Positions 24,104 through 39,449 of a DNA stretch of 64,000 bases are shown here, piece by piece. Location of the stretch: positions 124,001 to 188,000 of the IMG/VR virus record IMGVR_UViG_3300024308_000188. The stretch is one strand, 5' to 3'. The position numbers and the translations under genes are program-made. The notes below the pieces were generated by a model that ran no database searches, was not told where the DNA came from, and saw only the letters and a program-made list of their open reading frames with translations. The first letter of the stretch is position 1. The number at the start of each line of letters is the position of its first letter.

Positions 24104-24160
24104 ACTTTTCTAGGTGTGTCAAAAATGAGTGTTGCCTATTATAGTCTGTTTTGATATAAT
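24102..24160 (+). promoter_or_regulatory. composite promoter copy 5
   Basis: GGTGTGTCAAAAA; -35 TTGCCT, 17 nt, TATAAT 24155-24160. Confidence 0.8.
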
Positions 24161-24186
24161 AGGCACATTCAAACAAAGGAGAAAAC

Positions 24187-24441: not shown

Positions 24442-24444
24442 TAT

Positions 24445-24861: not shown

Positions 24862-24908
24862 GCTTTTTGGTAAAATACAGTCATTGGTTAAGGCAATAAG
24901 GCCACCAG
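24819..24908 (+). promoter_or_regulatory. composite promoter copy 6 with AGGCAA leader hairpin
   Basis: TGATCCAAGCGTGTCAAAAA; -35 TTGATC, 17 nt, TAAAAT 24871-24876; TGGT-taaggcaataaggcc-ACCA. Confidence 0.75.
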
Positions 24909-24937
24909 TTAAACATATTATGATGGGAATCTAGATC

Positions 24938-25714
24938 ATGAAAAGTGTACAAGAGTTAAACAACGCTAGTATGTCAGACCTTTTAACTTTCGCGGAAGAA
25001 AAAGGTTTAACCATTCCTGAACAAATGCGTTCAACAAAATATCAAAAAGCTGTTGTTGAGTATTTGACCCGAAATGCAATCTACGCAAACAAAGCACCTG
25101 TTCAGGTTGTTATCGACACTACTCAGGAATGCAAACTTTTGGTTTCAAGCGAATGTGTTGATGCTTATGTAGAATTTTTAGCACAAACAGCTGCAAAAGG
25201 TCGTGCGCCTGACTTTATGAATTCAGGTTATGAAATTCGTGAAGATCTTGGTGTGGTTACTGATGCACGTTTGCTGTTTAACTACGGCATGGTAAAACGT
25301 GTTGAAAAGTTTATTCAGTTACCTAAACTTGGGCTGCATATTAATTCTTTGAAAGATAAGTTTTCCGTTTTTGTTGTTGACGTTCCGTACAGGGTTGAAT
25401 TTTCATTTGCCGACGAATTCAAAATTCAACCTATAACCCCAAATTCAATAATGGTTGACGGCCAACTTTTTACAAATTGCAGTTACAGCGTTCGTATTCT
25501 TCGTGAAGATGAAGAAGATATGGAAGAAGATGATGCTGATTTACCTGTAGAAAACTTTGTCGATTTTCAGGAAATGAGTTTGCCAGCTTTGCAGCGTTAC
25601 GCTCGTGAAAATCTGCCGGATAAAGGTGCAAGTATTGATCACGGTATTTTCACCAGCCAAAGTTTCCTGCAAGAATATTTGGATGCTGTTATAAACGGAA
25701 TTGATATAGAATAA
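24938..25714 (+). CDS. hypothetical protein with terminal Rho_N/HeH-like helical modules
   Basis: N-term ELNNASMSDLLTFAEEKGLTIP; C-term DFQEMSLPALQRYAREN. Confidence 0.7.
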   Translation: MKSVQELNNASMSDLLTFAEEKGLTIPEQMRSTKYQKAVVEYLTRNAIYANKAPVQVVIDTTQECKLLVSSECVDAYVEFLAQTAAKGRAPDFMNSGYEIREDLGVVTDARLLFNYGMVKRVEKFIQLPKLGLHINSLKDKFSVFVVDVPYRVEFSFADEFKIQPITPNSIMVDGQLFTNCSYSVRILREDEEDMEEDDADLPVENFVDFQEMSLPALQRYARENLPDKGASIDHGIFTSQSFLQEYLDAVINGIDIE

Positions 25715-25778: not shown

Positions 25779-26030
25779 ATGAGAAAAGAATTAGTTGGTG
25801 CAATCGTCGCTTCTCAATTTAATCAGATTGCGATAGCCGAGGATATTAGTGAAGCCGAAGTTAAGCGTATTGTTAAAAGTTTAAAAGAAGATTACAGTGA
25901 GCCGCAGCAAGATTCTTGGCACGATGAAGGTATAGCTACTCGTTATCGTGCAACAAAAAAGTTGATTCCAAAAAGTTTACGTAGAGCAAAACGTGCTGTA
26001 CAAAAGAAGGCACGTAAAGCTCAACGATAA
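25779..26030 (+). CDS. hypothetical protein with a basic C-tail
   Basis: AAGGA RBS; 83 aa. Confidence 0.72.
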   Translation: MRKELVGAIVASQFNQIAIAEDISEAEVKRIVKSLKEDYSEPQQDSWHDEGIATRYRATKKLIPKSLRRAKRAVQKKARKAQR

Positions 26031-26277: not shown

Positions 26278-26883
26278 ATGATTAAAAAGTTTCCAAAGAA
26301 AGGTGAAAACAAAGCTCCAGTAAGTGTAAAACCTTCTGGTAAAGTTAAACCAAGTGCTAAATTTCCTGCAAAAGATACTCCGGTTAAAAAACCAAAAGCA
26401 AGTATTCCTGTTGCGGTAAGGTCAACTTTAAAAAGTGCTGGCATCGAAGTAAACAACATCGACAACTTAGATGCAAAATCATTAACTCGTGTTCTTTCTG
26501 CCGTAGATCAACTTTCAACTTTGATAAAAGAAAAGTTGGTTGATCTGAAAGGTTCTGGTACTGCCAAAACTGTAAATAAAACAGTGACTGGCAAAGCAAG
26601 TAAAAAGCAAGCGGTAGCGCAGTTCGTTGCTCCATCCACAGAGTTACGAAAGGTTTATCGTGAAGCAGGTTTGAGCGAAACTAAAGATTCGTTCAAGGCG
26701 AATTTAGCCAAAGCTAAAGAATTCGGCGTTGCATTATCAATGTTCAACAAGTCGATATTCGTAGATGATCAGGAACTTCTGGTTTACGGTGTTTCAGTGC
26801 GTGGTGGCGTTTGCCGCTTAATCTGTAAAAATGCCAAAGGCAAGGATGTTCGCGTTGAGTCAGATACTGTAATCAGTTTCTAA
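26278..26883 (+). CDS. basic protein with a K/P-rich N-terminus
   Basis: GAGGA RBS before MIKKFPKKGENKAP. Confidence 0.8.
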   Translation: MIKKFPKKGENKAPVSVKPSGKVKPSAKFPAKDTPVKKPKASIPVAVRSTLKSAGIEVNNIDNLDAKSLTRVLSAVDQLSTLIKEKLVDLKGSGTAKTVNKTVTGKASKKQAVAQFVAPSTELRKVYREAGLSETKDSFKANLAKAKEFGVALSMFNKSIFVDDQELLVYGVSVRGGVCRLICKNAKGKDVRVESDTVISF

Positions 26884-26931
26884 CAAAAAGTTTGTTTGAT
26901 TAATGTGTGGGGCAATCCTGCCCCGACCGTT

Positions 26932-26939
26932 CTGTAAAT
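26932..26939 (+). promoter_or_regulatory. CTGTAAAT candidate phage promoter
   Basis: Intergenic, just after the hairpin GGGGCA/TGCCCC; recurs at 31983, 32652, 50233 and 54376. Confidence 0.5.
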
Positions 26940-26971
26940 ATTTATTTGAATCCAATGTAAGGAAAGTTGAA

Positions 26972-28435
26972 ATGAAAGTAACTCCTAATGAAGCTTTAGT
27001 CGGTAAAAAAATTACTCTGTTAGATGGTTCGCGTGACACTATCACAGAGACAACTAAAACTGGTTACAAACTGCAAGGTCGTCGTAAAGGCGTTGCCGCA
27101 AATTGTGTTGTACGTGATGGTCAAAAGTTTGAAGAAATCGATCAGCCTGTTGACGGTGCAAAAGTTGGTTCTGGTTATGTGACTTTGCCAAAAGTTAAAA
27201 AAGCTCCGGCCAAAGCCGACAAAAAAGCTCCAGCAAAAGCTCCGGCCAAAGCCGACAAAAAACCAGCTGGCAAAAAAGTTGCTGAAACAAAACCTGCACG
27301 TAAGTCTGCCGCCAAAGTTGTGGAAGAACTGGAAGAAGTTGACGCCATTACTATCGAAAATGTTACTGAACAGTCAGGTGAAATTCGTTCAGCGGTTGAA
27401 GAAATTCTGCGCGAACATTTGCCAAAACGCTTTGACAATTTCGTTAGCGTAAACACTGGCGCACAGATCGAAGAAGAAGGTGGCGATCCGACCGTTATTC
27501 TTTGCATGTCAGATTTAACTTTTGACATTCCTGAAGAAGAGGAAGAGTTAGAAGAAGAACTAGAAGAACTGGAAGAAGAGGAAGAAGCTGTAGAATTTAA
27601 CTTCAGCGAAGAAACTTTATCTCTGGTTGAAGAAGGTCTGTGGGAAAGTCAGGTTGCCGCGAATTCAAAAGTTGCTCAACGTGTGTTTGCCGCACTGCAA
27701 CTGGACGAAGAAGAAATGGAAGAGTTTGTCATCGGTTCACGCTTAGTTGACGAAGATGGTAAAACTTACTACTTTGCTGGTATGCAACGTGATCCAGTTC
27801 GTTTGATTCTGGAAGATGAAAACGGTGAACCAAAAGATGTTGGTTCAAAAGACTTTGAAAGTTTAGACTTTGTTCCTTTCTCTGAAGAAGAGGAAACAGA
27901 AGTTGATGAACTGGAGGAAGAAGAAGTTGATGAACTGGACGAGCTGGACGAAGCCGAAGAAGAGGAAGAAGAATCTGAAGATGATTCAAATCTTTTAGAA
28001 GGCTGTGAATCTGCTGAAGAAGCCGCTGACGCACTGGCCGATTACTCTGAATCAGAAATCCGCACTTTCATCTTTGGTGCTGTTGATTTAGGTGAAGAAG
28101 GTAGCGAAGATTACGAAGCTACTGTTGATTACATCGAAGGTTTGGATAAAGAAGAACTGATCGAATACGTGGTCAGCCTGTTCTTTGAAGAAACTGACGA
28201 AGAGGAAGAGGAAGAAGAAGTTGAGGAAGGCATTACTGCCGAGGAAATCAACGAAATCCGCGACTTCGATTCTTTACTGGAAATTGCAAAACAATACAGC
28301 GATAAAGTTGGTAAAGTTTCGCAGAACATCCGTCACTTCCGTAAAATCAAAGCGTTGAAAGCTTTACTGATTGAAAAGTTGGTTGACGCTGAAGAAACTA
28401 CTGGCGAAGAGGACTTCGAGTTCGAGAGCGAGTAA
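26972..28435 (+). CDS. bipartite low-complexity protein: histone-like KKAPAK repeats plus a very acidic C-terminal two-thirds
   Basis: KKAPAKADKKAPAKAPAKADKK followed by multiple poly-Glu tracts; AAGGA RBS before MKVTPNE. Confidence 0.82.
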   Translation: MKVTPNEALVGKKITLLDGSRDTITETTKTGYKLQGRRKGVAANCVVRDGQKFEEIDQPVDGAKVGSGYVTLPKVKKAPAKADKKAPAKAPAKADKKPAGKKVAETKPARKSAAKVVEELEEVDAITIENVTEQSGEIRSAVEEILREHLPKRFDNFVSVNTGAQIEEEGGDPTVILCMSDLTFDIPEEEEELEEELEELEEEEEAVEFNFSEETLSLVEEGLWESQVAANSKVAQRVFAALQLDEEEMEEFVIGSRLVDEDGKTYYFAGMQRDPVRLILEDENGEPKDVGSKDFESLDFVPFSEEEETEVDELEEEEVDELDELDEAEEEEEESEDDSNLLEGCESAEEAADALADYSESEIRTFIFGAVDLGEEGSEDYEATVDYIEGLDKEELIEYVVSLFFEETDEEEEEEEVEEGITAEEINEIRDFDSLLEIAKQYSDKVGKVSQNIRHFRKIKALKALLIEKLVDAEETTGEEDFEFESE

Positions 28436-28527
28436 TTCTCTAGCTTAAGAGGAAGATGAAGAAGAGGAAGAATCTTTAACCAAGTAAATTGGCGGTAGGA
28501 ATTCCTACCGCCTAATCTGGAAAATTT

Positions 28528-29805
28528 ATGAATCAGCACACAAAGTTGATCTATTCAAGCATTTTGCATGAACAAGCGCCAAACGCTTTAACAAATTGTT
28601 TGATTACTACTGCTGTGCCTTTGTCTGGTGATCGTTGGGTAGCGCGAGGTAGCGCAAGCAGCGAACATCATTTCATGTTGCGTATATCACGTTCGCACCT
28701 TATTAATTTGTACAATCAAATTTGTCGTGGTAGTTATGTTGCTTGTGAAAAAGTTGCATTACTTTACGAATGCGGTTTAGCTTTGCCCCAAAGCAATATA
28801 AATAAAATGCTTTGGAATGAAGTCGCTGGTTATGATGCGGTTCAGTTGCCTGATTCCGTATTAACGAAAAAAGATCTAAGATCAGTTTTAAAAGAACACA
28901 TGCGCTCCGCTTTAGATTGCAGTGTGACTTATGTTCCTTCTGATCACTATTTAAAATTGATGAAGAGCATTTCTCAGTTCAAAATAGTAGATGGGCCAGC
29001 AAAATCTTGTTTAGGTAAAAGTTTTGTTCGTGTTCAAACTGACGCTTATGATATGTACTGCGTTTATAAAAAAGTTGCTGGTCAGACTAAGTTAGTTTCT
29101 GCTTTTCTGAATTACGTAGACTCCAAACAAAAAGAAAAGTTTGTTGATTTTACGTATCAAGCTTCAAACATTGTTCCACCGAATTTACCTGACGGTGCTT
29201 TTGGTAAAAGTGAGCAGTATTATGTTGTTTACGGCAAACTTGAGCGCAACGAATACGATCCTGAAATGGATTATGCTTCGGTGATTCATGAATGGATTAT
29301 TCACGATGTTGATCGTTTAGCTGAGATATATCGTGAACGTGCGGATCGAAAAAGTCCATATATTGGATTCTTAGATAAGTATCGTGAAAAGAAAGCAAAG
29401 GCAGTGCTTTATCTTTCAGAGTTCAATCAAATAAAACGGCCAACAAGACGCCAGATTAATTTGGCTGAAGCCGCTAAAAAGTTGATTGATGCTTTTGAAG
29501 AAAAGCGAGAAGCCAATCGTGAATTGCGTAAAAAAGCTCGTGAAGTTGCGAAAGCAAATGACCCAGTGAATTTATTTTGTTTTAAAGCATTAGATTTATT
29601 TCTTTGCTCAAATTCAAATGAGATCACATGCACTCCACCGAGCGTTAAACACCCTCAGATTATGAGCAAACTAAAAAGTTTGGGTTTTGTTTGTTGTGAT
29701 TCAAAAACAGCTCAGAGTTCCAGCCTCGAAAGCAGAAAGGGCAAAAATGGAACTCAGCCAGTTGTGAGAATTTCAAAACCTAAAATGTACTGGCAAAAAG
29801 CCTAG
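28528..29805 (+). CDS. hypothetical protein, 425 aa
   Basis: Long ORF after the hairpin GGCGGTAGG/CCTACCGCC. Confidence 0.8.
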   Translation: MNQHTKLIYSSILHEQAPNALTNCLITTAVPLSGDRWVARGSASSEHHFMLRISRSHLINLYNQICRGSYVACEKVALLYECGLALPQSNINKMLWNEVAGYDAVQLPDSVLTKKDLRSVLKEHMRSALDCSVTYVPSDHYLKLMKSISQFKIVDGPAKSCLGKSFVRVQTDAYDMYCVYKKVAGQTKLVSAFLNYVDSKQKEKFVDFTYQASNIVPPNLPDGAFGKSEQYYVVYGKLERNEYDPEMDYASVIHEWIIHDVDRLAEIYRERADRKSPYIGFLDKYREKKAKAVLYLSEFNQIKRPTRRQINLAEAAKKLIDAFEEKREANRELRKKAREVAKANDPVNLFCFKALDLFLCSNSNEITCTPPSVKHPQIMSKLKSLGFVCCDSKTAQSSSLESRKGKNGTQPVVRISKPKMYWQKA

Positions 29806-29813
29806 AGGACATT

Positions 29814-31964
29814 ATGCTAAAACCAAAACATAAGTTGTTGCCTAAAGTTAGTGCAGCTGCCGCTGCTTCTATGCAACAATCTAAAGTAGTGCCGAACTCA
29901 GCGCCTGTTGTGGCTGAACCAAAAACAAATGTTGGAGAAACCGCAATGTACGTTAACGAAGTTAAAATTCCTGCTCCAGAGAAAAAGCAATTCAATCCAT
30001 CTGTTGATTACACTAATCCGGTGAATCTTGAAGAGTTAAGTTTGAAAGGCCACAAAGATCTGTTGAACCATTTAGGTGGTAATGCGGAAGCTTTGTTGAA
30101 AGGTATTAAAAACGGTGCTGAATCTCGCAACAAACTTCGTGCCGAAATTGATCCGTTATTGGCCGCTTTATCTGGCGGAAATCCAGCAAACTCTACTTTT
30201 GATGAAGCTGATTTTGCCGAATTCGATCCGATGGTCGATTACTCAGACGCTTCAAAAGTTGAACAACTTTCTGATGACGGTCTGGCCGATCTGCTTATTC
30301 ACTTAGGCGGTTATGCCGATGAAGCTACAGAAAACGCTGAAACTTCAGACGAAGCTCGTCAAATGTTGATTGCAGCAATCAACAAAATTTATGCTGAAGA
30401 TTCAGATGAAAGCACAACTGTAGTTGTTGATGCTGTGCCGACTGCCAGCGATTTTGAAGCCGAAGAGTCGAGCGAATTTGATTTTGCAGAAAACGAAACT
30501 GTTTCAACAGCGCAGGTTATGCAGGAAATCACCGGAACTGAAAAAGTTGATGATTCAGATTTTGATGAACTTCTGGAACATGCTACCAACGGTGACGAAG
30601 ATAAATTTCTGGAAGTTTTGGACTCTATGGATCGCAAAGCCTTGCTTTCTCATTTTGAACAGCACATTAGCTTAACAGCTGATCAGCTTTCAGAAATTTC
30701 TGACTTAGGTACTTCAGAAATTCGTGAAGAATTACGCGGTCAGTATTCTGACGTTCTGGCCGTTGCTGAAAACAAAGCTTTGGCTGAAGTAGAAGCCGAA
30801 GATGATTCAGAAACTTCTGACGAAACTGACGACTTTGAAACTCATGAAGAAGAAGTCGAAGAAGTTGAACGCGACGATCCTGAAAACTATGTTTCTGATG
30901 AAGATGAAGAAGATGGTGTTCAGATTGAATTCACCGAAGAACAATTGGCTGAAATGGATGCCGAAATCGAAGCAGAAATGCAAGCTGAGGCTGAAGCTGA
31001 AGCTTTGAATGCCGAAGTGATTCGTCACTTAGAAGAAGTAGATTATTTAGGTTCAGAAGTTCCGCACTTTGAACTTACAACTTCTTCTCGCATTATTCTG
31101 GTTTTATCGGCTGGCACACAGCAAACTCGTGAAATCGATCAGGAAGAACTGGCCGCAATTTACATTGGCGAAAATGCAATGTGTGCCAATCATCCGTTAC
31201 GCCGTCGTGAAACCGATGACAAAAACATGGGCTGGTTTGTAGATCCAATGCAATCATTATCGCAAATGGTTGCAGAGTTTAACATGAAGCAGCGCGTTTA
31301 CTGCGGCCCAACAATTGCTGTTCATCAAACCGTTTATGGTATTTGTGAGAACCTGCAAAAAGTTGCAAAAGCTTTGGTCTACGGTTTAACCGATGACAAC
31401 GTATTACCAGAAGGTATCGATTTAAGCGACTTAGCTTCTATCAATGTTCAACCTTCAGTCGGTGATACTGAAAATGAAATCGTGTACAACTTTTTCGTAT
31501 CTCTGAACGTCCCAATGTTGGGCCGTAGCCGTGATTCAGAAAAGTTGCGCGGAAATCTGACGGCACTAAAAAAATCTGCTCAAGCAATTGCTGATGAAGC
31601 GACAGAAGAGTCGATTGAAATCATGGTTACTTTTGCAGCCGATTTAGATCTGCTGTTAAAATCTCGTGCTGTTGTTGATCTGTTTAACAAAACAGGCTAC
31701 TATAGCCGCGAACAGTTAGTTGAATATGTTCGTGAAAAAGCAGAACAGGCCGCTGAAATGCAGGACTCTGAATTTGAATTCGATGGTGAATTGGATGAAG
31801 AGTACGAAAGCGAAGAAGTTGAAGAAACAGAAGAAGAAATTGATTCAGAAGAAGAAACTGAGTCAGAAGTCGAAACCGACATTGTTCACACTCTGTTATC
31901 TGATTTTGATTCAATTTCTTACCTGTTGCCGTGGTCTGCAAACTCAATGATTGTCATTGAGTAA
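29814..31964 (+). CDS. large, highly acidic protein with repeated short helical modules
   Basis: 716 aa, D/E-rich linkers, basic N-terminus MLKPKHKLLPK; GAGGA RBS. Confidence 0.82.
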   Translation: MLKPKHKLLPKVSAAAAASMQQSKVVPNSAPVVAEPKTNVGETAMYVNEVKIPAPEKKQFNPSVDYTNPVNLEELSLKGHKDLLNHLGGNAEALLKGIKNGAESRNKLRAEIDPLLAALSGGNPANSTFDEADFAEFDPMVDYSDASKVEQLSDDGLADLLIHLGGYADEATENAETSDEARQMLIAAINKIYAEDSDESTTVVVDAVPTASDFEAEESSEFDFAENETVSTAQVMQEITGTEKVDDSDFDELLEHATNGDEDKFLEVLDSMDRKALLSHFEQHISLTADQLSEISDLGTSEIREELRGQYSDVLAVAENKALAEVEAEDDSETSDETDDFETHEEEVEEVERDDPENYVSDEDEEDGVQIEFTEEQLAEMDAEIEAEMQAEAEAEALNAEVIRHLEEVDYLGSEVPHFELTTSSRIILVLSAGTQQTREIDQEELAAIYIGENAMCANHPLRRRETDDKNMGWFVDPMQSLSQMVAEFNMKQRVYCGPTIAVHQTVYGICENLQKVAKALVYGLTDDNVLPEGIDLSDLASINVQPSVGDTENEIVYNFFVSLNVPMLGRSRDSEKLRGNLTALKKSAQAIADEATEESIEIMVTFAADLDLLLKSRAVVDLFNKTGYYSREQLVEYVREKAEQAAEMQDSEFEFDGELDEEYESEEVEETEEEIDSEEETESEVETDIVHTLLSDFDSISYLLPWSANSMIVIE

Positions 31965-31982
31965 GCTGCTGGTCTGCTAAAA

Positions 31983-31990
31983 CTGTAAAT
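31983..31990 (+). promoter_or_regulatory. CTGTAAAT candidate phage promoter
   Basis: Intergenic; followed by the long leader hairpin GGCAGGTC/GACCTGCC. Confidence 0.5.
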
Positions 31991-32087
31991 ACATAGGCAG
32001 GTCGGGAGGAATTTTAGAATTCTGACCTGCCGATGATAATGTAATAACTGTCGCTTTTGACTAAAATCGCAAAGGAAATTTATAGCT

Positions 32088-32609
32088 ATGTCAAACCAAA
32101 AGAAACTGCCTTTAACCAAAGGCAAAGCCCCTGTAAAAGCTGCCGGTAAAGTACCTGCCAAAGCTCCTGCTACAAAAGTTAAGAAAGCTGGCCAGCCTTC
32201 AATGCTTGATAAGTTTGAAAGCAAACTTTCCAAAATTTCTTTACGCAAGCACAACCCTAAAATGGAATTACGTGTTCGTATTGTTGCGAAACGCACTGCC
32301 CAACACCTGCAAGGTTATTTGCTGAAAATCGAAGGTGAATCTTTTGTTTTCTCACACACAAAACCTCGTTCTTCCAAGCAAACAGTTTCAATCTTTCCAG
32401 CGAAAGATGTAATCATGTACACTGGTGCTGTAGGTGAACGCGCTCAAATCACCGTGATGTCACAAGAAGTTGTTCGTGAAATCAAACGTGCCAATGTTGA
32501 AACTCGCGGTTCTGCCAATGTTATCACAAATCTGGACACTGGTGACGTTACTGTTTTTAATACGTCAAATACTGACGGCTTTGAAATGCAGACCGAACTG
32601 GCCGAGTAA
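32088..32609 (+). CDS. basic protein: K/A/P-rich N-tail plus a small beta domain
   Basis: KKLPLTKGKAPVKAAGKVPAKAPATKVKK; AAGGA RBS. Confidence 0.8.
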   Translation: MSNQKKLPLTKGKAPVKAAGKVPAKAPATKVKKAGQPSMLDKFESKLSKISLRKHNPKMELRVRIVAKRTAQHLQGYLLKIEGESFVFSHTKPRSSKQTVSIFPAKDVIMYTGAVGERAQITVMSQEVVREIKRANVETRGSANVITNLDTGDVTVFNTSNTDGFEMQTELAE

Positions 32610-32651
32610 TTCTTTTCAAGTATTCCCTTAGTTTAGTCTGCTTTGGGAATA

Positions 32652-32659
32652 CTGTAAAT
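32652..32659 (+). promoter_or_regulatory. CTGTAAAT candidate phage promoter
   Basis: Intergenic, abutting the hairpin AGTATTCCC/GGGAATACT. Confidence 0.5.
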
Positions 32660-32721
32660 TCTTTAGTATACCTAAATGGTATAAACAATTTTTTATAACA
32701 GTAGAACATTGGGAAAATATC

Positions 32722-33447
32722 ATGTCAAAGAAAAAGACCGCCGGAAAAACAGTTGCTTCTGCGTTACTGGAATTGCTGACAGTTTGTGTTGAAGAAGGTG
32801 TTATCGAAGCTGATGACGTTGTTGCCGCTGTAGGCGCTCCTGCCGGTAAATCCTCCAAAGGCAAAAAATCCAAAAAGGATGAAGAAGTCGAAGAGGAAGA
32901 AGAGGAAGAAGAGTCTGATGAACCAGACTTTGAAGAAATGAATCTGAAGCAGCTGAAAAAGTTTGCTAAAGACAACGAAATCGAGATCCCTAAAAAGATC
33001 AAAGATGAAGATGACCTGCGCGAGTTTTTAGCTGAGCAGTATTCCGAAGAGGAAGAGGAAGAAGAGGAAGAAGAGGAAGAAGAATCTGATTCTCCTGACT
33101 TCGAGGACATGGATCACAAAGCACTGAAAAAGTTTGTGAAAGAAAATGATCTGGAAGTTCCTGCCAAAGTTCTGAAAGACGAAGATGACCTGCGCGAGTG
33201 GTTGGAAGAAAACTATTCCTCTGACGAAGAAGAGGAAGAAGAGGAAGAAGAGTCTGAAGAACCAGACTTTGAAGAAATGGATTTAAAAGAAATGAAGGCT
33301 TTCGCAAAAGAAAACGATCTTGAGCCGCCTAAGAAGGCGCTGAAGAACGAAGATACTCTGCGTGAGTGGCTGGAAGAAAACTATTCCTCTGACGAAGAAG
33401 AGGAAGAGGAAGAAGAGGAAGAAGAGGAAGAGTGGGAAGAAGATTAA
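32722..33447 (+). CDS. extremely acidic protein with three tandem ~40 aa helical modules separated by poly-Glu
   Basis: 3x PDFE(E/D)M..K.LK.F.K.N.LE.P.K.LK.ED.LREWL.E.YS-E(n). Confidence 0.85.
   Translation: MSKKKTAGKTVASALLELLTVCVEEGVIEADDVVAAVGAPAGKSSKGKKSKKDEEVEEEEEEEESDEPDFEEMNLKQLKKFAKDNEIEIPKKIKDEDDLREFLAEQYSEEEEEEEEEEEEESDSPDFEDMDHKALKKFVKENDLEVPAKVLKDEDDLREWLEENYSSDEEEEEEEEESEEPDFEEMDLKEMKAFAKENDLEPPKKALKNEDTLREWLEENYSSDEEEEEEEEEEEEEWEED
32923..33440 (+). repeat. three ~170 bp direct repeats plus GAAGAGGAA tracts
   Basis: CCAGACTTTGAAGAAATG, GAAGATGACCTGCGCGAG and GAAGAAAACTATTCCTCTGACGAAGAAGAGGAAG recur. Confidence 0.85.
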
Positions 33448-33535
33448 TCCCTGACCTCTAACTAACCTTCTTTAAAATTTAAAGCGATGTGTATTGCATC
33501 GCTTTCCTTTAATTCGCAATAAGAGAAATTGAAAA

Positions 33536-34003
33536 ATGAGTAAACAAGCTATTTCCGCACTGAACAAAAGTGCAACTGCTTCTACAAAGCAAGCCGCTGC
33601 TTTACGCAAACAAGCAGAAGCTTTAGTTAAAGCCGCTGAACAAGCAGAAGCAGTTGCTGCCGCTACAAAACAGCAAGCCGAAGCTTTAGCAGGTAATCCA
33701 GCTCCTGCCGCAAAAGCTCCTGCCAAAGCTGACAAAAAAGCTCCGGTAGCCGATAAGAAAGCTCCGGCCAAAGCGGATAAGAAAGCTGACAAAAAAGCTG
33801 ACAAAAAAGCTCCGGCCAAAGCGGATAAGAAAGCTGATAAAAAGTCTGCTGACAAAAAAGCTCCGGCCAAGTCAGACAAGAAAGCTGACAAAAAGCCAGC
33901 TGATAAAAAGTCTGCTGACAAAAAAGCTCCGGCCAAGTCAGACAAGAAAGCTGACAAAAAGCCTTCTACAAAAAAGAAAAATAACGACTTCGATTTTGAA
34001 TAA
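33536..34003 (+). CDS. histone H1-like / AlgP-like Lys-Ala-Pro DNA-condensing protein
   Basis: N-terminal Ala-rich coiled coil followed by repeated KKAPAKADKK / KADKK units. Confidence 0.8.
   Translation: MSKQAISALNKSATASTKQAAALRKQAEALVKAAEQAEAVAAATKQQAEALAGNPAPAAKAPAKADKKAPVADKKAPAKADKKADKKADKKAPAKADKKADKKSADKKAPAKSDKKADKKPADKKSADKKAPAKSDKKADKKPSTKKKNNDFDFE
33712..33963 (+). repeat. tandem imperfect repeats encoding KKAPAK(A/S)DKK
   Basis: AAAGCTCCGGCCAA, GCTGACAAAAA and GATAAGAAAGC repeated. Confidence 0.85.
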
Positions 34004-34082: not shown

Positions 34083-34511
34083 ATGAACACGAGTTTGGCT
34101 CATGTAACCAATAATCTGCTTCACATAAAAGATCCTGTTGAGCTTTATGCTTACATGGTTTCTTACCGCACTTCGCTTCGCCTCAACTTACTTGAGCTAG
34201 AGCAACAAAAAACTGAACAAACAAACTTAGTTGCAAAGGGAAATAGAATCCTTACTAAAAACAAGGACAATCTAGATCCAGAAGATATTGCAATTTGGGA
34301 AGGTTCAGTATCTTGCGCCAAAGCCTCTTTGGAAATTCTAAAAGTTAGTCTGATGGAAACCTCTATGGTTCTTGATGCTGTTAATGCAAATATTTCCTTG
34401 CTAGGGAAACATTATAATCTCAGCGAAGAAAAGATTTTATCTACTCAGATTGATAGCATTAACGAATATTTCCGAAAATGTTTGGGGATAACTTTAAATG
34501 CCGAGCATTAA
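34083..34511 (+). CDS. hypothetical coiled-coil protein
   Basis: 142 aa ORF. Confidence 0.7.
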   Translation: MNTSLAHVTNNLLHIKDPVELYAYMVSYRTSLRLNLLELEQQKTEQTNLVAKGNRILTKNKDNLDPEDIAIWEGSVSCAKASLEILKVSLMETSMVLDAVNANISLLGKHYNLSEEKILSTQIDSINEYFRKCLGITLNAEH

Positions 34512-34875
34512 AAAGCGCTTGACTTCTTTGCAGAATCAAGGAACTTCGTGGTTTGAAAAGTTTGAGGCTAAGGTTGATGTTTTCCGGCAAGATGTTTTCC
34601 GAGCTTTTATTTTGGATGGTTATATTTTCCTGATAACAGCTACAGGTAACTCAATCACAGCACCTATTGAAATTGTCGCCACCGTTCTTGACGAAAATTT
34701 TTCTCAGATACCAGTCAAGTTGGATTCTTCTGATCTGAAATTGGTTAATGCTTATGTAAAAGTTCTTAACCTTATTTCTTCTGGAAGATTACCAGATGCT
34801 GATCCAGATCTGACTTCAAAAATAATTCAAGTGTTGGAGTCTCGTTATTTCAATACAAATAACAATACGCCTTAA
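34498..34875 (+). CDS. hypothetical protein
   Basis: Overlapping start; 125 aa. Confidence 0.7.
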   Translation: MPSIKKRLTSLQNQGTSWFEKFEAKVDVFRQDVFRAFILDGYIFLITATGNSITAPIEIVATVLDENFSQIPVKLDSSDLKLVNAYVKVLNLISSGRLPDADPDLTSKIIQVLESRYFNTNNNTP

Positions 34876-34887
34876 GGAAAGATCCCA

Positions 34888-36870
34888 ATGGCTAAAGCAA
34901 AAGCAAAATCTGCAAATACTTATGATGAAGATAGTATTCAGGTTCACAAAGGTTTAGCTGGTGTTAGATTAAACGCTGGCATGTACATGGGTGAGCTTGG
35001 CGATTCAATGATGTATCGCATGGGCAAAGAAGCTGTTGAAAACAGCCGCGATGAATACGAAGCTGGACGCAACAACGCAATCTATGTAGCCTTTAATAAC
35101 AAAACAAGTGAATACGTTTTTGCCGACTGCGCTCAAGGTATTCCTGTTGGAATGAAAACAGTTGAAGGTAAAAAAGTAAGCGCATTAACAGTAATTCTTA
35201 CTGAACTTCATGCTGGCGGAAAATTTGATGTAAAAGCTTATCAGACTTCAGGTGGTACGCACGGTGTTGGTATTTCTGCGGTCAATGCTTTATCAAAAGA
35301 ACTTGAGGTCTGGACTTGTCGTGAAGATCAGTGGTACTACCAAAGTTTTTCATGCGGAAAAGAAACCAGTCCTGTTAAAAAGGTTCCAGACACTTTCCTC
35401 AAGAAAAAGTTTGGTTATCTTTTGCCGCTCAAGAAAAAGTTTAAGCGACTTGGCACTATCATTCGCTTGGTTCCAGATCAAAGCGTGATAAGCGTTGATG
35501 CTAGTCGTACCTCAAAACTTAAAACATATACCCAAGCTGTTTTGGAAGAACAAAAGTTTGCTGATTATTTAAAGTTCATGAGTACCATGAATAGCAAGCT
35601 TTATATCGGTTTCCTAAACCTTGAAACAAACAAAGAACAGGTTTTCTACAATGATAAAGGTTTGGGTGCTGTAGTCAGTTCAATAATTTCTGATCATGAT
35701 TTAGAGCCTTTGGGTAAGCCATTCGAGTTCGATGGCTCAAGCCTGAAAGTTGCTATTCAATGGTCTAATCACTATGACAGTGATCTGTTCAGAAGTTATG
35801 TAAATAGTAGTCCAACAATAGATCATGGTACGCATGTAAATGGTTTCCGTGCGGCCATGTCAAAAGCTTTGAAAAACTATCTGCCCAAAAAAGCAGGTAA
35901 GTTTAAGCCAGAAGATCTTTATGTTGGCGCAGTTGCTATTATCAACTGGAAAATGAACAGCGCTCAATTTAGTGGTCAGGTAAAAGATAAACTGGTATCT
36001 AAAATCGATAACGAAGTTTGTGATTTACTGACTCAACCATTAACCGATTTTTTTGCAAAGAACAAAACATTAGCCAAGCAGATTATAAAACGCGCAAGTG
36101 ATGTTGCGGCTTCCCGTGAAGATCTTGCTAAAACAATGAAAGGCATGAGCGAAGTTAAAAAAGGTGGAAGTAAGCTGCCGATAAAACTTTATGAAGCTCC
36201 AGATTGTAAACCGCATGAGCGTGAGCTGTATTTTGTCGAAGGCGATTCGGCTGGCGGTACTGCCAAAAATGCTCGTGGCTTTAATCAGGAAGTTTTAAAA
36301 CTTGGCGGTAAAATTCCAAACGCATTGAATGTTAGTCTAAGTGCCTTACTTTCAAATGACCGCATTCAAGATATGCTGAACAGTTTGGGAGTTGACATAA
36401 AAAGTTTGGATGTTAAAGCTGATAATCCTACATTCAGTACAAAGAATCTGCGAGTTGCTGTTGCAATGTTGCTTGCTGATGCTGATGCTGATGGATCTCA
36501 CATTAACGTACTTATCACCGCATTTTTCTATAAACTTATGCCCGACTTTATTAAAGAAGGTCGTTTGTTTGTTGTTGACGCTCAATTGTACAACGCACTC
36601 GTTAATGGTGTGCATTACAGCGGAAACACAATGGAAGAGTGTTTAGCTAAGTTACCAAAAAATGCTCCGAAGGGAAGTGTGTTCCGTGCAAAAGGTTGGG
36701 GAGAGACAGATGCAGATTTACTTGAAGCCATAGCATTTGATATTAACAACAGAAAGTTGATTCAAATTGAATATGGCAAAGTTCAAGAAGATCTTGCGTT
36801 TTACAGATCAGTTGTAGGTGAAGATGCCTCTGCCAGACGGCAATTGTTGGGGTTAAGTTCCAACGATTAA
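34888..36870 (+). CDS. gyrB: type IIA topoisomerase, GyrB/ParE-like subunit
   Basis: GHKL ATPase (EAVENSRDE, D..QGIP, LHAGGKFD, SGGTHGVGISAVNALS), TOPRIM EGDSAGG and DADADGSHI, KGWGE. Confidence 0.95.
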   Translation: MAKAKAKSANTYDEDSIQVHKGLAGVRLNAGMYMGELGDSMMYRMGKEAVENSRDEYEAGRNNAIYVAFNNKTSEYVFADCAQGIPVGMKTVEGKKVSALTVILTELHAGGKFDVKAYQTSGGTHGVGISAVNALSKELEVWTCREDQWYYQSFSCGKETSPVKKVPDTFLKKKFGYLLPLKKKFKRLGTIIRLVPDQSVISVDASRTSKLKTYTQAVLEEQKFADYLKFMSTMNSKLYIGFLNLETNKEQVFYNDKGLGAVVSSIISDHDLEPLGKPFEFDGSSLKVAIQWSNHYDSDLFRSYVNSSPTIDHGTHVNGFRAAMSKALKNYLPKKAGKFKPEDLYVGAVAIINWKMNSAQFSGQVKDKLVSKIDNEVCDLLTQPLTDFFAKNKTLAKQIIKRASDVAASREDLAKTMKGMSEVKKGGSKLPIKLYEAPDCKPHERELYFVEGDSAGGTAKNARGFNQEVLKLGGKIPNALNVSLSALLSNDRIQDMLNSLGVDIKSLDVKADNPTFSTKNLRVAVAMLLADADADGSHINVLITAFFYKLMPDFIKEGRLFVVDAQLYNALVNGVHYSGNTMEECLAKLPKNAPKGSVFRAKGWGETDADLLEAIAFDINNRKLIQIEYGKVQEDLAFYRSVVGEDASARRQLLGLSSND

Positions 36871-36882
36871 GAGGATCGTGAA

Positions 36883-37272
36883 ATGGGACAACGCTACTAT
36901 GCTCTAATGGACTTAAGCTTTATTCCAATAAAGATGAATCCAGATCACATGCGAAATAATAGTTTGACTGTGTTTTGGGTTCGACTTTCATTTATCAACA
37001 CAAAGATTAAACGGGCCGCTTTGATTGTACTTAGTAATGATGGTACAATCGTAAAAAGTGTTTGGCCCACAAAATCGAAAACAATATCTTCAGTTATATT
37101 GAATGTGTTTGAGAGAACTTCTCTTGATGGTGACGATTGGAATTGGGACGAGCTTTTAAAAATAAGTCTGGCGCGAAAGCGTATGATTCAGTATTATGGA
37201 TCAAGAGAGTCTTATCGCAGACGTATTGCTTTGCTTCCAGTTACGCAAAATAGTTTGCATAATATTTGTTGA
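36883..37272 (+). CDS. hypothetical protein
   Basis: GAGGA RBS; 129 aa. Confidence 0.7.
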   Translation: MGQRYYALMDLSFIPIKMNPDHMRNNSLTVFWVRLSFINTKIKRAALIVLSNDGTIVKSVWPTKSKTISSVILNVFERTSLDGDDWNWDELLKISLARKRMIQYYGSRESYRRRIALLPVTQNSLHNIC

Positions 37273-37281
37273 GGAAATTGC

Positions 37282-37707
37282 ATGATTAAAAAACAAATTG
37301 TATTCATGTATATGGCTCAAGGTGTAGTCGAAGAAAGTTGTCGATGGATAAAAGCTGAACTTGAAGTCAACGACAATCCTAAAAAATTGTTGGAAACTCG
37401 ATTGCAGTGTATGGCCTTAGCTATTGTGGATGCGAACGGATTTTTCATAAAACGCCCTCCACAAAATATTATTGGTAGCGTTTCCCGTGTTTACACTACA
37501 GGTCTTTATTGGTTGGGTAAGAATAGTAAATTCCTGACAGACACGTTGCTTAATGAATTGAGTGAAAAGAAAACTCTTTCAACATTAGGACTGGACTCTG
37601 TGAGAGCATATGTTTCTTATTTGAGTTCAAATAATCCGTATGATCAAGTTCAATTCACTTCATTCCTGAAAGAAGTGTTACCTAAAGGAACACCATCTTT
37701 AGTATGA
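37282..37707 (+). CDS. hypothetical protein
   Basis: GAGGA RBS; 141 aa. Confidence 0.7.
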   Translation: MIKKQIVFMYMAQGVVEESCRWIKAELEVNDNPKKLLETRLQCMALAIVDANGFFIKRPPQNIIGSVSRVYTTGLYWLGKNSKFLTDTLLNELSEKKTLSTLGLDSVRAYVSYLSSNNPYDQVQFTSFLKEVLPKGTPSLV

Positions 37708-37765
37708 ACTGATCCAAGTGTGTCAAAAATCAGGGGTTTATTTCAATACCTTATTTTGGTATAAT
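37707..37765 (+). promoter_or_regulatory. composite promoter copy 9 (upstream of gyrA)
   Basis: AACTGATCCAAGTGTGTCAAAAA; 33 nt from TGTCAA to TATAAT 37760-37765. Confidence 0.78.
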
Positions 37766-37805
37766 CCGGCCTGTTCGCTTACACAAAAAGTTGGTAAACT
37801 AAACA

Positions 37806-39449
37806 ATGAAATCAAAAAAGCCGCCAGCAAAAACAAAGAAAGTTTCTAAGACTGAGTTGGGAGATATTAAACAACATAAAAAGTCGAAGAAAAATTTACC
37901 CGCAGTTGTTGAACCTAATCAATTCAAACTGCCTTCCACTGTACTGATGAAAACTATTGTCAAAGAAGATTTGGCAAACTTTGCAAAAAGAAATTTAACT
38001 CATTACGGTGAATACGTTGTACAAGATCGTGCTGTTCCAGAATTCCGTGATGGATTAAAGCCAGTTCACCGCCACATTATTTATGCAATGTCTCAGCTGA
38101 ATTTATTCGGTTCTGACTTTAAAAAGTGTGCGCGTATTGTTGGTGATACAATTGGTAAGTATCATCCTCACGGTGACTCTGCAACGTATGGTGCATTAGT
38201 TACGTTAGCCAATACAATTCCAAAACTTATTCAAGGTCGAGGAAATTTTGGCAGTCCACTCGATATGGCGGCAGCTCAGCGTTATACTGAAGCGCGTTTG
38301 AGTGATTACAGCAAACTTTTTCTTTTGGATAAAGGTTATCTTGAAGTTGTTCCGCGTATAAACAACTTTGATGACAGCGAAAAAATTCCGTTGTATTTGC
38401 CTTCGCTTCTTCCAACAATGCTGTTGATTGGAAATGCTGGTGGTATTGCCTACGGTGTTCGTGCTTGTAATCCTGCTTTTGAAATTGAAGGCGTTACAAA
38501 ACTTATTCAAATTGTATTGGAAAAAGGCGATTTGAAATCTTCTGATTGTGTAAAGCATTTAAAAATTCAAGCTCCTTTTGGATCTGATTGCGTTAGCACA
38601 CCAGAAGAACTTGCAAGCTTTATTGAAACAGGTAGAGCAAAGGCAATAAAATATTGTCCGAAAGTTCAAGTTGATTACAAAAATAAAATCGTTGAAATTG
38701 TTTCTTATTCTCCCGGTTTCGCATCTGAAGATGGCGTTGCTAAAAAACGTGATAAGATTTTAGAATTACCCGAAGTTAGTCGTTGGGTAAGTGACTGTGG
38801 TGATAAACGTCCGAACGCTGGCCCTTATGGTGCATATTATTATGTTGTACCAAAACGTGGAATGTCAGATGACGGCCTTTTTGATTTAGCTGAAAAAATT
38901 CGTAAGATGTTGACTGGCAGTGAGTTCTATAACTTAGGACTTACAATAAACAACGTCGATGGAACTGCTAAATTCCTTTACTGTAACTTTGCGACCTATA
39001 TTAAAAACTGGGTTCGCTATCGTGTGGAATTGGAAAAGCGTTATCTGGAAAACATTATTGCAAAACGCGAACGCGATTTGTGGGAATACAACGTATTGTC
39101 CTACGCTGTTATCAACAAGAATAAAATCTTGGAAGTAATGAAAAAAGCTTTGGACAAAGATGATCCAGATACTTACACTGCAAAAACATTGAAGATTCCT
39201 CAAGATGAAGCTACTTTCATTTTGGAATTGAAAATGCGTAGGCTGGCAAAACTTGAACTGAAAGCGCTACAGGACAAGATTAAAATTGCTACTGCCGACA
39301 TTAAAGGATGGAAACGCGATCACAAAGATCCTAATCCTCGTATCGCTTCTTCCTTGACCGAATCTGTAAATAAGTATGTACGGATGGTAAATGCTTCAAT
39401 CGCAGACACTAAAAAGTCTGAGAAGAAGCGCAAGAAAAAAGCAGACTGA
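37806..39449 (+). CDS. gyrA: type IIA topoisomerase, GyrA/ParC-like subunit lacking the C-terminal pinwheel
   Basis: [53 protein letters not shown] (catalytic Tyr); only 547 aa. Confidence 0.95.

Follow-up and report, generated by a model that had tools for sequence, protein, structure and literature searches.

A conserved module of acidic and basic disordered proteins beside the topoisomerase genes of a jumbo phage

The stretch of DNA analysed here (the window) spans 64,000 nucleotides, from position 124,001 to 188,000 of the IMG/VR record IMGVR_UViG_3300024308_000188. Within it, a block of genes coding for strongly acidic and strongly basic proteins lies just before the genes of a type II topoisomerase (Table 1). 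The initial annotation had pointed to six charged ORFs within 8 kb, some of them with their own CTGTAAAT site, and this observation holds, as all six are present on the + strand with the composition described and in-frame variants of them occur in other samples. However, some details of that description need to be amended. In particular, the H1-like protein is not a pure polycation but a polyampholyte with more K than D, carrying a coiled-coil-like segment at its N-terminus and an acidic-aromatic tip; the 716-aa acidic protein has a conserved, non-repetitive C-terminal region; and a 425-aa gene in the middle of the block had been overlooked. Moreover, other polyelectrolyte proteins exist elsewhere in the genome.

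Table 1. Features of the block and its surroundings, in window coordinates. L-numbers denote relatives of the phage, as defined in the text, and L031 is another relative.
Position	Strand	Feature	Description	Supporting evidence
24132..24160	+	Early sigma-70-type promoter	GTGTCAAAAA ... TGATATAAT, before the 84-aa gene at 24187; probably starts the transcription unit that runs into the block	Same extended architecture at window 5494, 12929, 17495 and 37757, and in L006, L008 and L032
26062..26208	+	Two sigma-70-type promoter matches	TTGTTA-17-TATAAT, upstream of gene 26278	One to three tandem copies of the early-type promoter at the same place in L031, L032, L006 and L008
26278..26883	+	201-aa protein	K/P/A-rich N-terminal tail (net +20), helix-linker-helix-like middle part, small conserved C-terminal beta domain	Orthologues of 196-205 aa in L032, L006 and L008
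26932..26939	+	CTGTAAAT promoter element	40 nt before the start of gene 26972	Conserved before the orthologous gene in L032, L006, L008 and L031
26972..28435	+	487-aa protein, net -90	In order: conserved about 60-aa N-terminal domain, K/A/P tract (KKAPAKADKK), poly-Glu tracts, conserved middle domain, helix-linker-helix module, C-terminal DFEFESE	PHROG 33433 (E 8e-15); alignment with Y3_315, JA29_301, Yen_216 and NCTB_073, which shows 26972, not 26903, to be the true start
28528..29805	+	425-aa presumed pseudo-ligase	Unbiased composition; predicted NAD+-DNA-ligase adenylation (nucleotidyltransferase) fold without the motif I lysine; presumed nick or DNA binder; one Sel1-like repeat near residues 60-100	AF2 model with pLDDT 87.7 and pTM 0.83; top Foldseek hits in PDB and AFDB are NAD+ DNA ligases; Sel1 proteins hit by the family profile
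29814..31964	+	716-aa acidic protein, net -119	Helix-linker-helix-like modules and acidic tracts in the N-terminal half, conserved C-terminal region (about residues 400-645), EFEFD at residue 653, acidic tail; starts 9 nt after the stop of the pseudo-ligase gene	Alignments; Atlas model with pLDDT 0.37; AF2 model of the C-terminal region too poor to use
31983..31990	+	CTGTAAAT promoter element	105 nt before gene 32088	Conserved in L030, L031, L032 and L006
32088..32609	+	173-aa protein	K/P/A-rich tail and conserved beta-rich domain with invariant HxKPRSSK.TVS motif; tail N-terminal in this clade, C-terminal in Y3, JA29, Yen9-02 and PaBG	PHROG 22271 (E 8.5e-14); Atlas model with pLDDT 0.71 and no structural match
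32652..32659	+	CTGTAAAT promoter element	70 nt before gene 32722	Conserved in L030, L031, L032 and L006
32722..33447	+	241-aa hyperacidic protein, 42% D/E	Conserved basic-plus-hydrophobic N-terminal helix, then three units of poly-Glu plus a PDFEEM-led helix-linker-helix module; 168-nt tandem unit in the DNA, 2.2 copies	PHROG 3281 matched by all three modules (E 5.6e-16); sub-threshold Rho_N, HA and Ish1 matches; orthologues with 43-67% D/E in Y3, NCTB, JA29, Yen9-02, PaBG, L040 and L041; close three-module orthologue in L032
33481..33505	+	Stem-loop	11-bp stem followed by a T-rich stretch, between the hyperacidic and H1-like genes; could be a partial terminator or a processing site	
33536..34003	+	155-aa H1-like protein	About 55-aa helical, coiled-coil-like N-terminus, K/A/P/D (KADKK) repeats (net +23), C-terminal DFDFE; exact 66-nt duplication	Orthologues end in DFDFEE, EFAFDN, DFDFDME, EFDFDN, FEFELDD, EFEFDV, DFEDFDDLD, EFDFQE and DFDFDD; N-termini give weak hits to coiled-coil families
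34083..34875	+	Two small conserved ORFs (142 and 125 aa)	No assigned function; separate the block from gyrB in nearly all relatives examined	
34888..39449	+	Phage type II topoisomerase	GyrB-like subunit (34888-36870) and ParC/GyrA-like subunit (37806-39449), the latter with its own early promoter at 37757	Pfam DNA_gyraseB, Toprim and DNA_topoisoIV in the 95%-identical relative

The charged genes are clustered more than expected by chance. Indeed, 4 of the 11 genes of the genome with strongly charged tracts fall within 7 consecutive genes (permutation p about 0.01), and five of seven consecutive genes score above 55% disordered by charge-hydropathy, against a genome median of 26%. The whole block is also conserved in gene order, gene size and charge pattern in at least ten diverged lineages of the PaBG/Lu11/NCTB/Y3/JA29 ("Lupandier") jumbo phages, namely Erwinia phage Y3, phage NCTB, Dickeya JA29, Yersinia fHe-Yen9-02, Pseudomonas PaBG and five metagenomic lineages (L030, L032, L006/L008, L040 and L041), although sequence identity is often only 15-30%. 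The block lies before gyrB in nine of these ten lineages, while in PaBG it is not next to the topoisomerase. Against a relative whose flanking topoisomerase genes are 94-95% identical, the proteins of the block are 74-91% identical with only in-frame gaps, and the two indel sets seen inside the coding repeats in other samples, +6 nt and a net -9 nt, are in frame as well. It could be argued that the genes are unrelated, fast-evolving accessory ORFs whose low-complexity tracts arose by replication slippage and that merely happen to be neighbours, since the repeats are dynamic, other charged proteins are scattered through the genome and few family matches were found in any library. Yet this possibility is very unlikely, as order, sizes, charge signs, the N-terminal helix of the hyperacidic protein, the HxKPRSSK motif of the barrel protein and the C-terminal F-x-F tip are kept in ten lineages, the promoters are conserved, the indels are in frame and the genes are clustered within this genome alone. 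Thus, a joint function of the acidic and basic proteins is likely.

A short motif is shared among the proteins of the block and has emerged as new from this analysis. [DE]F[DE]F[DE] occurs three times in the block against 0.14 expected, with 0 of 1000 shuffles reaching three, once in the H1-like protein and in two acidic proteins, and its all-phenylalanine form occurs nowhere else in the 246 ORFs. The looser form [DE]-F-x-F-[DE] ends the H1-like protein in nine of ten lineages, with the spaced variant DFEDFD in PaBG.

The promoter class of the block is also a new finding. CTGTAAAT occurs 11 times in the window against 3.7 expected, and while the copy at 26570 is inside a gene, three copies stand before genes of the block and are conserved at the orthologous positions in relatives with 41-45% protein identity. 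The same element precedes the genes for DNA polymerase, SbcC, clamp loader, primase, helicase, SSB, sigma factor and an exonuclease. The temporal class of the promoter is inferred from the genes it precedes, and as it also precedes the portal gene it is not purely a replication signal. In contrast, gene 26278 and the start of the transcription unit have early sigma-70-type promoters, which would be compatible with a role in host takeover or anti-defence. In this view, the hyperacidic proteins would act as disordered DNA mimics that soak up host DNA-binding proteins, such as nucleoid proteins or restriction and other defence nucleases, while the polycationic proteins would compact or silence the host chromosome, as Chlamydia Hc1 does when made in E. 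coli. Indeed, a very high negative charge density (42-67% D/E here) is the hallmark of DNA-mimic proteins such as Ocr, ArdA and Arn, and these phages have no recognised nucleus shell or tubulin (group assignment from PMC7412058; no tubulin match in the 214.5-kb record, in a search that did not extend to chimallin) and so need other protection. Nevertheless, this reading appears unlikely, as the block keeps its composition in phages of very different hosts, including Pseudomonas, Erwinia, Dickeya, Yersinia and uncultured aquatic and subsurface samples, which fits a phage-intrinsic target better than a host-specific one, and three genes carry the promoter of the replication genes rather than the early one. 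Moreover, known mimics are small folded early proteins, whereas these are long, modular and linked to a ligase-fold protein and the topoisomerase, and no Pfam, PHROG or NCBIfam match to any anti-restriction family was found.

The link of the block with DNA is supported by the 425-aa protein and by the position of the block at gyrB in nine of ten lineages. Besides the predicted fold, a profile alignment (hhalign) to the phage's own LigA gives E 6.8e-5, and the motif I lysine is present in 1 of 24 family members. The equivalence of the missing lysine rests on our reading of the alignment around motif I rather than on a residue-level structural superposition. A real NAD+ ligase is encoded elsewhere in the genome.

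Virion data from a relative, a further new element, bear on whether the proteins could be structural. None of the PaBG homologues (gp122-132) is among the 14 identified bands of the virion proteome (PMC7412058), the only one available for a relative, although these were only 14 Coomassie bands. An alternative possibility is that the polycations are packaged with the DNA to neutralize its charge, as internal head proteins do, while the polyanions chaperone them or act as scaffold-like assembly factors that are expelled or degraded. In support of it, the portal gene has the same CTGTAAAT element, one module gives a weak match to a DNA-packaging family (PF11123, E 0.004, below threshold), terminase and portal genes lie 12-16 kb downstream, and charge neutralization is a real problem for capsids holding genomes above 200 kb. 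This reading is nonetheless improbable, since a different set of highly acidic (785 aa, net -185) and K/A/P-rich (566 and 347 aa) genes sits beside the major capsid gene and better fits a head-internal or scaffold role, and since the block lies among repair and replication genes (UvdE, topoisomerase, DnaB) and contains a ligase-fold protein.

All in all, the conserved synteny, the promoter type of three of the genes, the ligase-fold protein and the absence from the PaBG virion proteome favour an intracellular, DNA-directed role during replication over a structural one. The initial annotation had proposed a phage nucleoid or condensate system that could compact DNA, chaperone it for packaging or build a shell-less replication compartment, a proposal that is only partly supported, as nothing in these data shows compaction, coacervation, a compartment or protection from nucleases, and a complex prediction of the H1-like protein against three proteins of the block gave no answer. 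Our preferred, still tentative reading, to which we assign a probability of about 40%, is that the region is one conserved functional module of the Lupandier-type jumbo phages, made during the DNA-replication phase, that coats and organizes phage DNA next to the phage topoisomerase II. What the analysis establishes is the make-up of the module: three proteins that each join a small folded domain or coiled coil to a lysine-rich, H1-tail-like disordered segment (26278, 32088, 33536), three that join long poly-Glu/Asp tracts to short helix-linker-helix modules and conserved folded regions (26972, 29814, 32722), and one folded protein with the adenylation fold of NAD+-DNA ligase without the catalytic lysine (28528), whose gene is directly followed by that of the largest acidic protein. 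How these parts would work, including their expression during replication and any binding to DNA or to one another, is instead inferred, and DNA binding by the K-rich tails and the helix-linker-helix modules is deduced only from composition and sub-threshold matches. In this view, the lysine-rich tails would bind phage DNA non-specifically and neutralize it, and the pseudo-ligase would anchor the assembly at nicks or other DNA features. The polyanionic proteins would compete with DNA for the polycations, acting as chaperones that keep the coat dynamic, so that polymerase, topoisomerase and later the packaging motor can get through, while the [DE]-F-x-F-[DE] tips would act as short docking motifs that tie the proteins to one another or to replisome proteins. 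The result might be a mere coat, a compacted nucleoid or a liquid-like compartment.

Different known systems can be compared with this module. The bacterial H1-like nucleoid proteins (Chlamydia Hc1/Hc2, Pseudomonas AlgP, the mycobacterial HupB tail and Rv3852) and the C-terminal tail of eukaryotic linker histone H1 have K/A/P-rich repetitive disordered tracts of the kind that bind and compact DNA non-specifically, as found here. Gene 26972 gives a weak compositional match to the Rv3852 family (E 0.0015, far below the cut-off), and an Hc1-type protein (PF07432) has been predicted in another jumbo-phage lineage (PMC12619734). However, the likeness of the H1-like protein to H1 is compositional only, as Pfam searches found no Hc1 (PF07432) or linker-histone globular domain in any of seven orthologues, its repeats contain regular Asp or Glu (KADKK, KAEK), it has a coiled-coil-like N-terminal part and a conserved acidic-aromatic tip, and it always sits beside a hyperacidic partner gene. 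The eukaryotic polyanion/polycation chaperone pairs (prothymosin-alpha with H1, nucleoplasmin, nucleolin), some of which the initial annotation had mentioned, are also oppositely charged disordered proteins, and nucleolin alternates acidic and basic tracts within one chain, as 26972 does. The presumed logic, in which the polyanion keeps polycation-DNA binding reversible, is the same, but there is no sequence or domain relationship, the setting is a phage in a bacterium, and the acidic proteins here carry helix-linker-helix modules and conserved folded regions.

With regard to NAD+-dependent DNA ligase (LigA) and the heterodimeric ligase of the T5-like phage PR1 (PDB 9i5i, 9hu3), the 425-aa protein differs in that it has no Pfam DNA_ligase_aden match, the motif I lysine is absent in 23 of 24 family members, no OB, HhH or BRCT region was recognized and a complete LigA is encoded elsewhere; it is probably a non-catalytic DNA or nick binder. 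The HeH/SAP/Rho_N helix-extended-helix nucleic-acid-binding modules share with the about 40-residue modules of the block the pattern of a hydrophobic helix, a short P/K-rich linker and a second helix. The modules give Rho_N, Ish1 and HA matches (E 0.003-0.03), and the nearest named Atlas neighbours of the 716-aa protein by sequence features are SAP, Rho_N and Ish1, but all matches are below the curated thresholds, no orthologue does better and a profile of the modules finds no solved structure, thus making the assignment a lead rather than a finding. Phage-driven phase separation (SPO1, PMC13401047) and the chimallin phage nucleus are both ways for a phage to organize its DNA transactions in space; no homology to either was seen in the Pfam, PHROG or NCBIfam scans of the block and there is no evidence for a compartment, although multivalent, oppositely charged disordered proteins such as those of the block are typical condensate builders. 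Finally, the acidic C-terminal tails of single-strand-binding proteins (E. coli SSB DDDIPF, T4 gp32, T7 gp2.5 and gp4) are short tails with terminal aromatic residues that dock onto replisome partners. Although the motif differs, having two phenylalanines spaced by one residue, and the carriers are not OB-fold SSBs, the [DE]-F-x-F-[DE] tips have the same character, and three of the genes of the block share their promoter type with the replication genes.

The block lies in a window formed by bases 124001-188000 of a 214,526-bp linear IMG/VR virus record, about 85% complete by CheckV, with about 37-42% G+C, which comes from subsurface metagenomes and also appears in wastewater libraries. The record is probably a fragment, as a 99%-identical locus lies on a 319.5-kb IMG/VR contig and a relative with 74-95% protein identity lies on a 329-kb contig, and statements about absent genes thus hold only for the part in hand. 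Based on topoisomerase similarity (44-50%) and shared gene order, the phage belongs to the jumbo-phage group of Pseudomonas PaBG and Lu11, phage NCTB, Dickeya JA11/JA29/AD1, Erwinia Y3/Yoloswag/Alexandra and Yersinia fHe-Yen9-02, which is referred to as the "Lupandier" group (PMC7412058) or subgroup 2.2 (PMC7824862). A nucleotide search of GenBank phages returned nothing.

The cluster of acidic and basic proteins described in the initial annotation is real, as every ORF named there is present on the + strand with the composition ascribed to it. The genes are designated here by their start in the window; the true start of the second gene is 26972, since the orthologues begin there and a CTGTAAAT element lies between 26903 and 26972. 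Genes with strongly charged tracts are clustered in this genome, with 4 of 11 falling in 7 consecutive genes (p about 0.01), and five of seven consecutive genes score above 55% disordered on a charge-hydropathy scale, against a genome median of 26%. The repeats are real and not assembly artefacts. Indeed, read mapping recovered the locus in four runs from two studies (two DNA and two "RNA" metagenome runs), and the two indel sets inside the coding repeats are in frame, namely +GAAGAG in a poly-Glu run and a net 9 nt lost in the H1-like repeats; the "RNA" runs cannot show transcription, because depth is flat and DNA carry-over is likely. In the 329-kb relative the proteins of the block are 74-91% identical with only in-frame gaps, against 94-95% for the topoisomerase subunits. 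An exact 66-nt tandem duplication in the H1-like gene and a 168-nt (56-aa) tandem unit in the hyperacidic gene, together with the in-frame indels of other samples, indicate that repeat number is evolving now.

The same series of genes occurs in the same order in Y3, NCTB, JA29, fHe-Yen9-02, PaBG and five metagenomic lineages (L030, L032, L006/L008, L040 and L041), thus making the block an ancient conserved unit. The series starts with a protein of about 500-630 aa with a conserved N-terminal domain, a basic tract and acidic tracts, followed by a protein of about 420-470 aa with ordinary composition and, directly after it, a large acidic protein (356-1062 aa, net charge down to -201) with a conserved C-terminal region. 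Then come a protein of about 165-195 aa with a conserved beta-rich domain and a lysine-rich tail (the barrel protein), a protein of 150-310 aa with 42-67% Asp+Glu and a conserved N-terminal helix, an H1-like protein of 140-200 aa, and one or two small ORFs, usually two. The series is followed by gyrB, except in PaBG. Pairwise identities are often 15-30%, so composition and architecture are what selection keeps. In particular, the lysine-rich tail of the barrel protein is N-terminal in this clade, NCTB, L040 and L041 but C-terminal in Y3, JA29, Yen9-02 and PaBG, meaning that the tail is needed while its position is free. The genes just upstream may belong to the same unit, and comprise a 569-aa acidic protein (net -44, with orthologues of 668-673 aa in L032 and L006) and a 258-aa protein (24938) with Rho_N-like helix-linker-helix segments at both ends, followed by a very basic 83-aa protein. 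An 11-bp stem-loop between the hyperacidic and H1-like genes could set the ratio of the two products by partial termination or RNA processing. On the downstream side, the gyrB-like gene of L032 (an IMG/VR contig of 286.6 kb) is interrupted by what look like in-frame insertions, with an ORF of more than 1058 aa against 660 aa here, two sequence stretches typical of intein splice junctions and a homing-endonuclease-like segment, and these are probably inteins.

Positions of the features discussed in the text, in coordinates of the window, of the whole record (genome) or of the relative L032
Feature	Reference	Position	Strand
Early-class promoters	window	5494, 12929, 17495, 24152, 37757	+
Upstream acidic 569-aa and 258-aa (24938) genes	window	22394-25714	
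Very basic 83-aa gene	window	25779-26030	
Ligase-fold 425-aa gene	window	28528-29805	+
168-nt tandem unit, hyperacidic gene	window	33058-33420	
66-nt tandem duplication, H1-like gene	window	33832-33963	
In-frame indels in other samples	window	32889; 33745-33757	
11-bp stem-loop	window	33481-33505	
AAACTGTAAAT promoter, before portal gene 50267-52201	window	50233	
AAACTGTAAAT promoters	window	54376, 55025	
AAACTGTAAAT promoters outside the window	genome	79242, 100799, 104330, 112413, 116459, 117515	
Major capsid gene	genome	31629-32723	
Second polyelectrolyte set	genome	33507-38745 and 40555-41775	-
NAD+-dependent DNA ligase (LigA)	genome	51415-53379	-
PF01653 match within LigA	genome	52528-53151	
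256-aa protein with PAGKKP(A/S)A repeats	genome	93023-93793	-
gyrB-like gene with probable inteins	L032	15760-18936	

A short motif is shared among proteins of the block. The H1-like protein ends in DFDFE, and its orthologues end in DFDFEE, EFAFDN, DFDFDME, EFDFDN, FEFELDD, EFEFDV, DFEDFDDLD, EFDFQE and DFDFDD. In this genome, [DE]F[DE]F[DE] also ends the 26972 protein (DFEFE) and precedes the acidic tail of the 716-aa protein 29814 (EFEFD), which amounts to three sites in the block against 0.14 expected, with no shuffle in 1000 reaching three, while the all-phenylalanine form occurs nowhere else among the 246 ORFs. This looks like a docking motif, although no receptor is identified.

The initial annotation overlooked the 425-aa gene 28528 in the middle of the block. 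The protein has about 24 full-length relatives among 1.84 billion representative proteins, and with that alignment AlphaFold2 gives a confident model (pLDDT 87.7, pTM 0.83) with the adenylation (nucleotidyltransferase) domain fold of NAD+-dependent DNA ligase. Indeed, Foldseek against PDB, AFDB and BFVD returns NAD+-dependent DNA ligases after the protein's own orthologues, and a profile comparison with the phage's own bona fide LigA (PF01653 at 71.5 bits) aligns residues 342-416 with the motif IIIa-IV region (E 6.8e-5). By contrast, the protein has no Pfam hit, so that neither membership of PF01653 nor the C-terminal OB, Zn, HhH and BRCT domains are supported, and the PF01653 search of the genome finds only the true LigA. 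At the position matching KEDG (K111) of the phage's LigA, the AMP-accepting lysine of motif I (KxDG) is replaced in 23 of 24 family members, with Ala in the window protein, while the following Asp is mostly kept; the positional equivalence comes from our reading of the alignment. As the LigA encoded elsewhere in the genome is complete with an intact KEDG motif, the ligase-fold protein is an extra, diverged copy or an ancient offshoot. The label "Sel1 repeat protein" was rejected, since it covers only one repeat-like segment and the predicted fold is ligase-like; the Atlas has no model of this protein. The protein is thus read as a ligase-derived pseudo-enzyme, most simply a putative binder of nicks or DNA. 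The downstream acidic gene starts 9 nt after its stop here, and within 22 nt or overlapping it in most relatives, which suggests a complex.

Three promoter-like classes emerge. The first, early class is a strikingly uniform, long conserved sigma-70-type promoter (GTGTCAAAAA, about 26 nt, TGnTATAAT), in the form CCAAGTGTGTCAAAAA, about 26 nt, then TTTTGGTATAATG (an extended -10), which is conserved in the relatives L006, L008, L031 and L032 and of which copies also stand before gene 26278 and its orthologues. The upstream GTGTCAAAAA element is longer than a plain -35 hexamer and may be a regulator or UP-like site. In the second class, CTGTAAAT, usually preceded by AAA, lies 24-116 nt before the genes for DNA polymerase, SbcC, clamp loader, primase, helicase, SSB, the phage sigma factor, an exonuclease and the portal, and also before 26972, 32088 and 32722, and those three sites are conserved in relatives with only 41-45% protein identity. 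In this AAACTGTAAAT promoter class, a G/T-A-rich element (often AGTA) follows 5-7 nt downstream. A reading of CTGTAAAT as a late, virion-only promoter was rejected, because it mostly precedes replication genes. The third class, TATAATTTAG, precedes several genes in the structural region, on the minus strand outside the window. The block is therefore co-regulated mainly with the replication genes, as judged from promoter sequence, whereas the temporal label "middle" is an inference; no transcriptome exists for this phage group.

Pfam, PHROG and NCBIfam scans of all block proteins gave only unknown-function PHROGs and sub-threshold or compositional matches. The H1-like protein has the Lys/Ala/Pro-rich repetitive basic tail of linker histone H1 and Chlamydia Hc1, with KKAPAKADKK-type repeats and 28% K+R, and the same holds in all orthologues. 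However, no linker-histone or Hc1 match (PF00538, PF07432) was found for 33536 or six orthologues even at E up to 1, so that the likeness to H1 is compositional; its N-terminus weakly matches coiled-coil families. A 256-aa protein encoded outside the window, with net charge +62 and about twelve PAGKKP(A/S)A repeats, is even more AlgP/H1-like, yet it stands alone without an acidic neighbour. The three modules of the hyperacidic protein, and similar segments in 26972, 29814 and the upstream gene 24938, follow a helix, P/K-linker, helix pattern. They match Rho_N (E 0.003-0.012), Ish1 (0.022) and HA (7.7e-5), all below the gathering scores, while PHROG 3281 is matched three times (E 5.6e-16). The nearest named Atlas neighbours of the 716-aa protein are SAP, Rho_N and Ish1, but the orthologues give no such matches and a profile of the modules against PDB sequences found nothing meaningful, so the HeH assignment stays a lead. 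The barrel protein 32088 has an invariant HxKPRSSK.TVS motif and no recognisable relatives; the possibility that it is Hfq/Sm-like found no support, as PF23874 gave no match and the Atlas score was only 0.65. Atlas look-ups gave no usable structural neighbours for 32088 or 29814, and an AlphaFold2 model of the 29814 C-terminal region, built from five sequences, reached a pLDDT of 46.5 and was unusable.

The conserved block, the replication-type promoters, the predicted ligase fold, the topoisomerase neighbourhood and the absence of the PaBG homologues from its virion proteome point to an intracellular, DNA-directed function during replication, although the proteome comprises only 14 bands, none of which is gp122-132, and its sensitivity was low. 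A packaging role cannot be excluded but appears unlikely, also because a second set of extreme polyelectrolytes beside the major capsid gene is a more natural head-internal or scaffold set. This set includes a 785-aa protein (net -185, with a C-terminal PHROG 20988 domain), two K/A/P-rich paralogues (347 and 566 aa, the latter net +66) and a basic 406-aa protein. Similarly, host-directed mimicry or compaction remains possible though improbable: no Pfam, PHROG or NCBIfam match to phage DNA-mimic anti-restriction families (Ocr, ArdA, Arn) was found, and the acidic tracts are homopolymeric and predicted disordered rather than a folded surface copying B-DNA charge spacing. The mechanism proposed is a dynamic polycation coat on phage DNA, buffered by polyanions, tied together by F-x-F tips and anchored by the pseudo-ligase. 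While the conservation, charge pattern, promoter positions and shared motif are results of the analysis, this mechanism is inferred, as is DNA binding by the H1-like tails, and any DNA compaction, functional mimicry or demixing is hypothetical. A complex prediction of 28528, 32722 and 32088 against the H1-like protein scored 0.26, below the 0.32 mark, and is no evidence either way.

All in all, the initial interpretation of the cluster as a phage nucleoid or condensate system is only partly supported. The block does have the multivalent, oppositely charged disordered chains expected of condensate scaffolds, as indicated by charge and disorder profiles, repeated modules and the shared short motif. 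As for the phage nucleus, PF00091 finds no tubulin (PhuZ) gene in the record, about 85% complete, while the same search detects tubulin or FtsZ in 13 of 14 control genomes, and the phage group is not counted among Chimalliviridae (PMC7412058, PMC7824862). A more speculative and rather unlikely possibility is that Lupandier-type jumbo phages, in this view lacking a protein shell, may wrap their replicating genome in a self-made, dynamic "phage chromatin" or coacervate. H1-like polycations and poly-Glu/Asp partners would form the matrix, F-x-F tips would cross-link it, a dead DNA ligase would anchor it to nicks, and the adjacent topoisomerase II would keep it untangled. Such an assembly would concentrate the replisome and exclude host nucleases, thus representing a shell-less functional analogue of the phage nucleus.

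How jumbo phages without a chimallin nucleus organise and protect a genome above 200 kb inside the cell has no answer so far, and the block is a concrete, conserved candidate, for which cultured relatives exist in tractable hosts (Pseudomonas PaBG, Erwinia Y3, Dickeya JA29 and AD1, and Yersinia fHe-Yen9-02). Even if the condensate idea fails, the pseudo-ligase and the F-x-F motif remain new, well-defined handles on jumbo-phage DNA metabolism. The block is not mentioned in the two comparative papers that cover this phage group (PMC7412058, PMC7824862), nor in a 2026 review of jumbo phages, in which histones, condensates, phase separation and disorder do not appear. Phage-encoded DNA-organising proteins are themselves known, as an H1-like (Hc1) protein has been predicted in another jumbo lineage and phase separation has been shown for phage SPO1; what is new here is a multi-gene module in which histone-tail-like polycations and polyanionic partners are combined with a pseudo-ligase and a shared motif.
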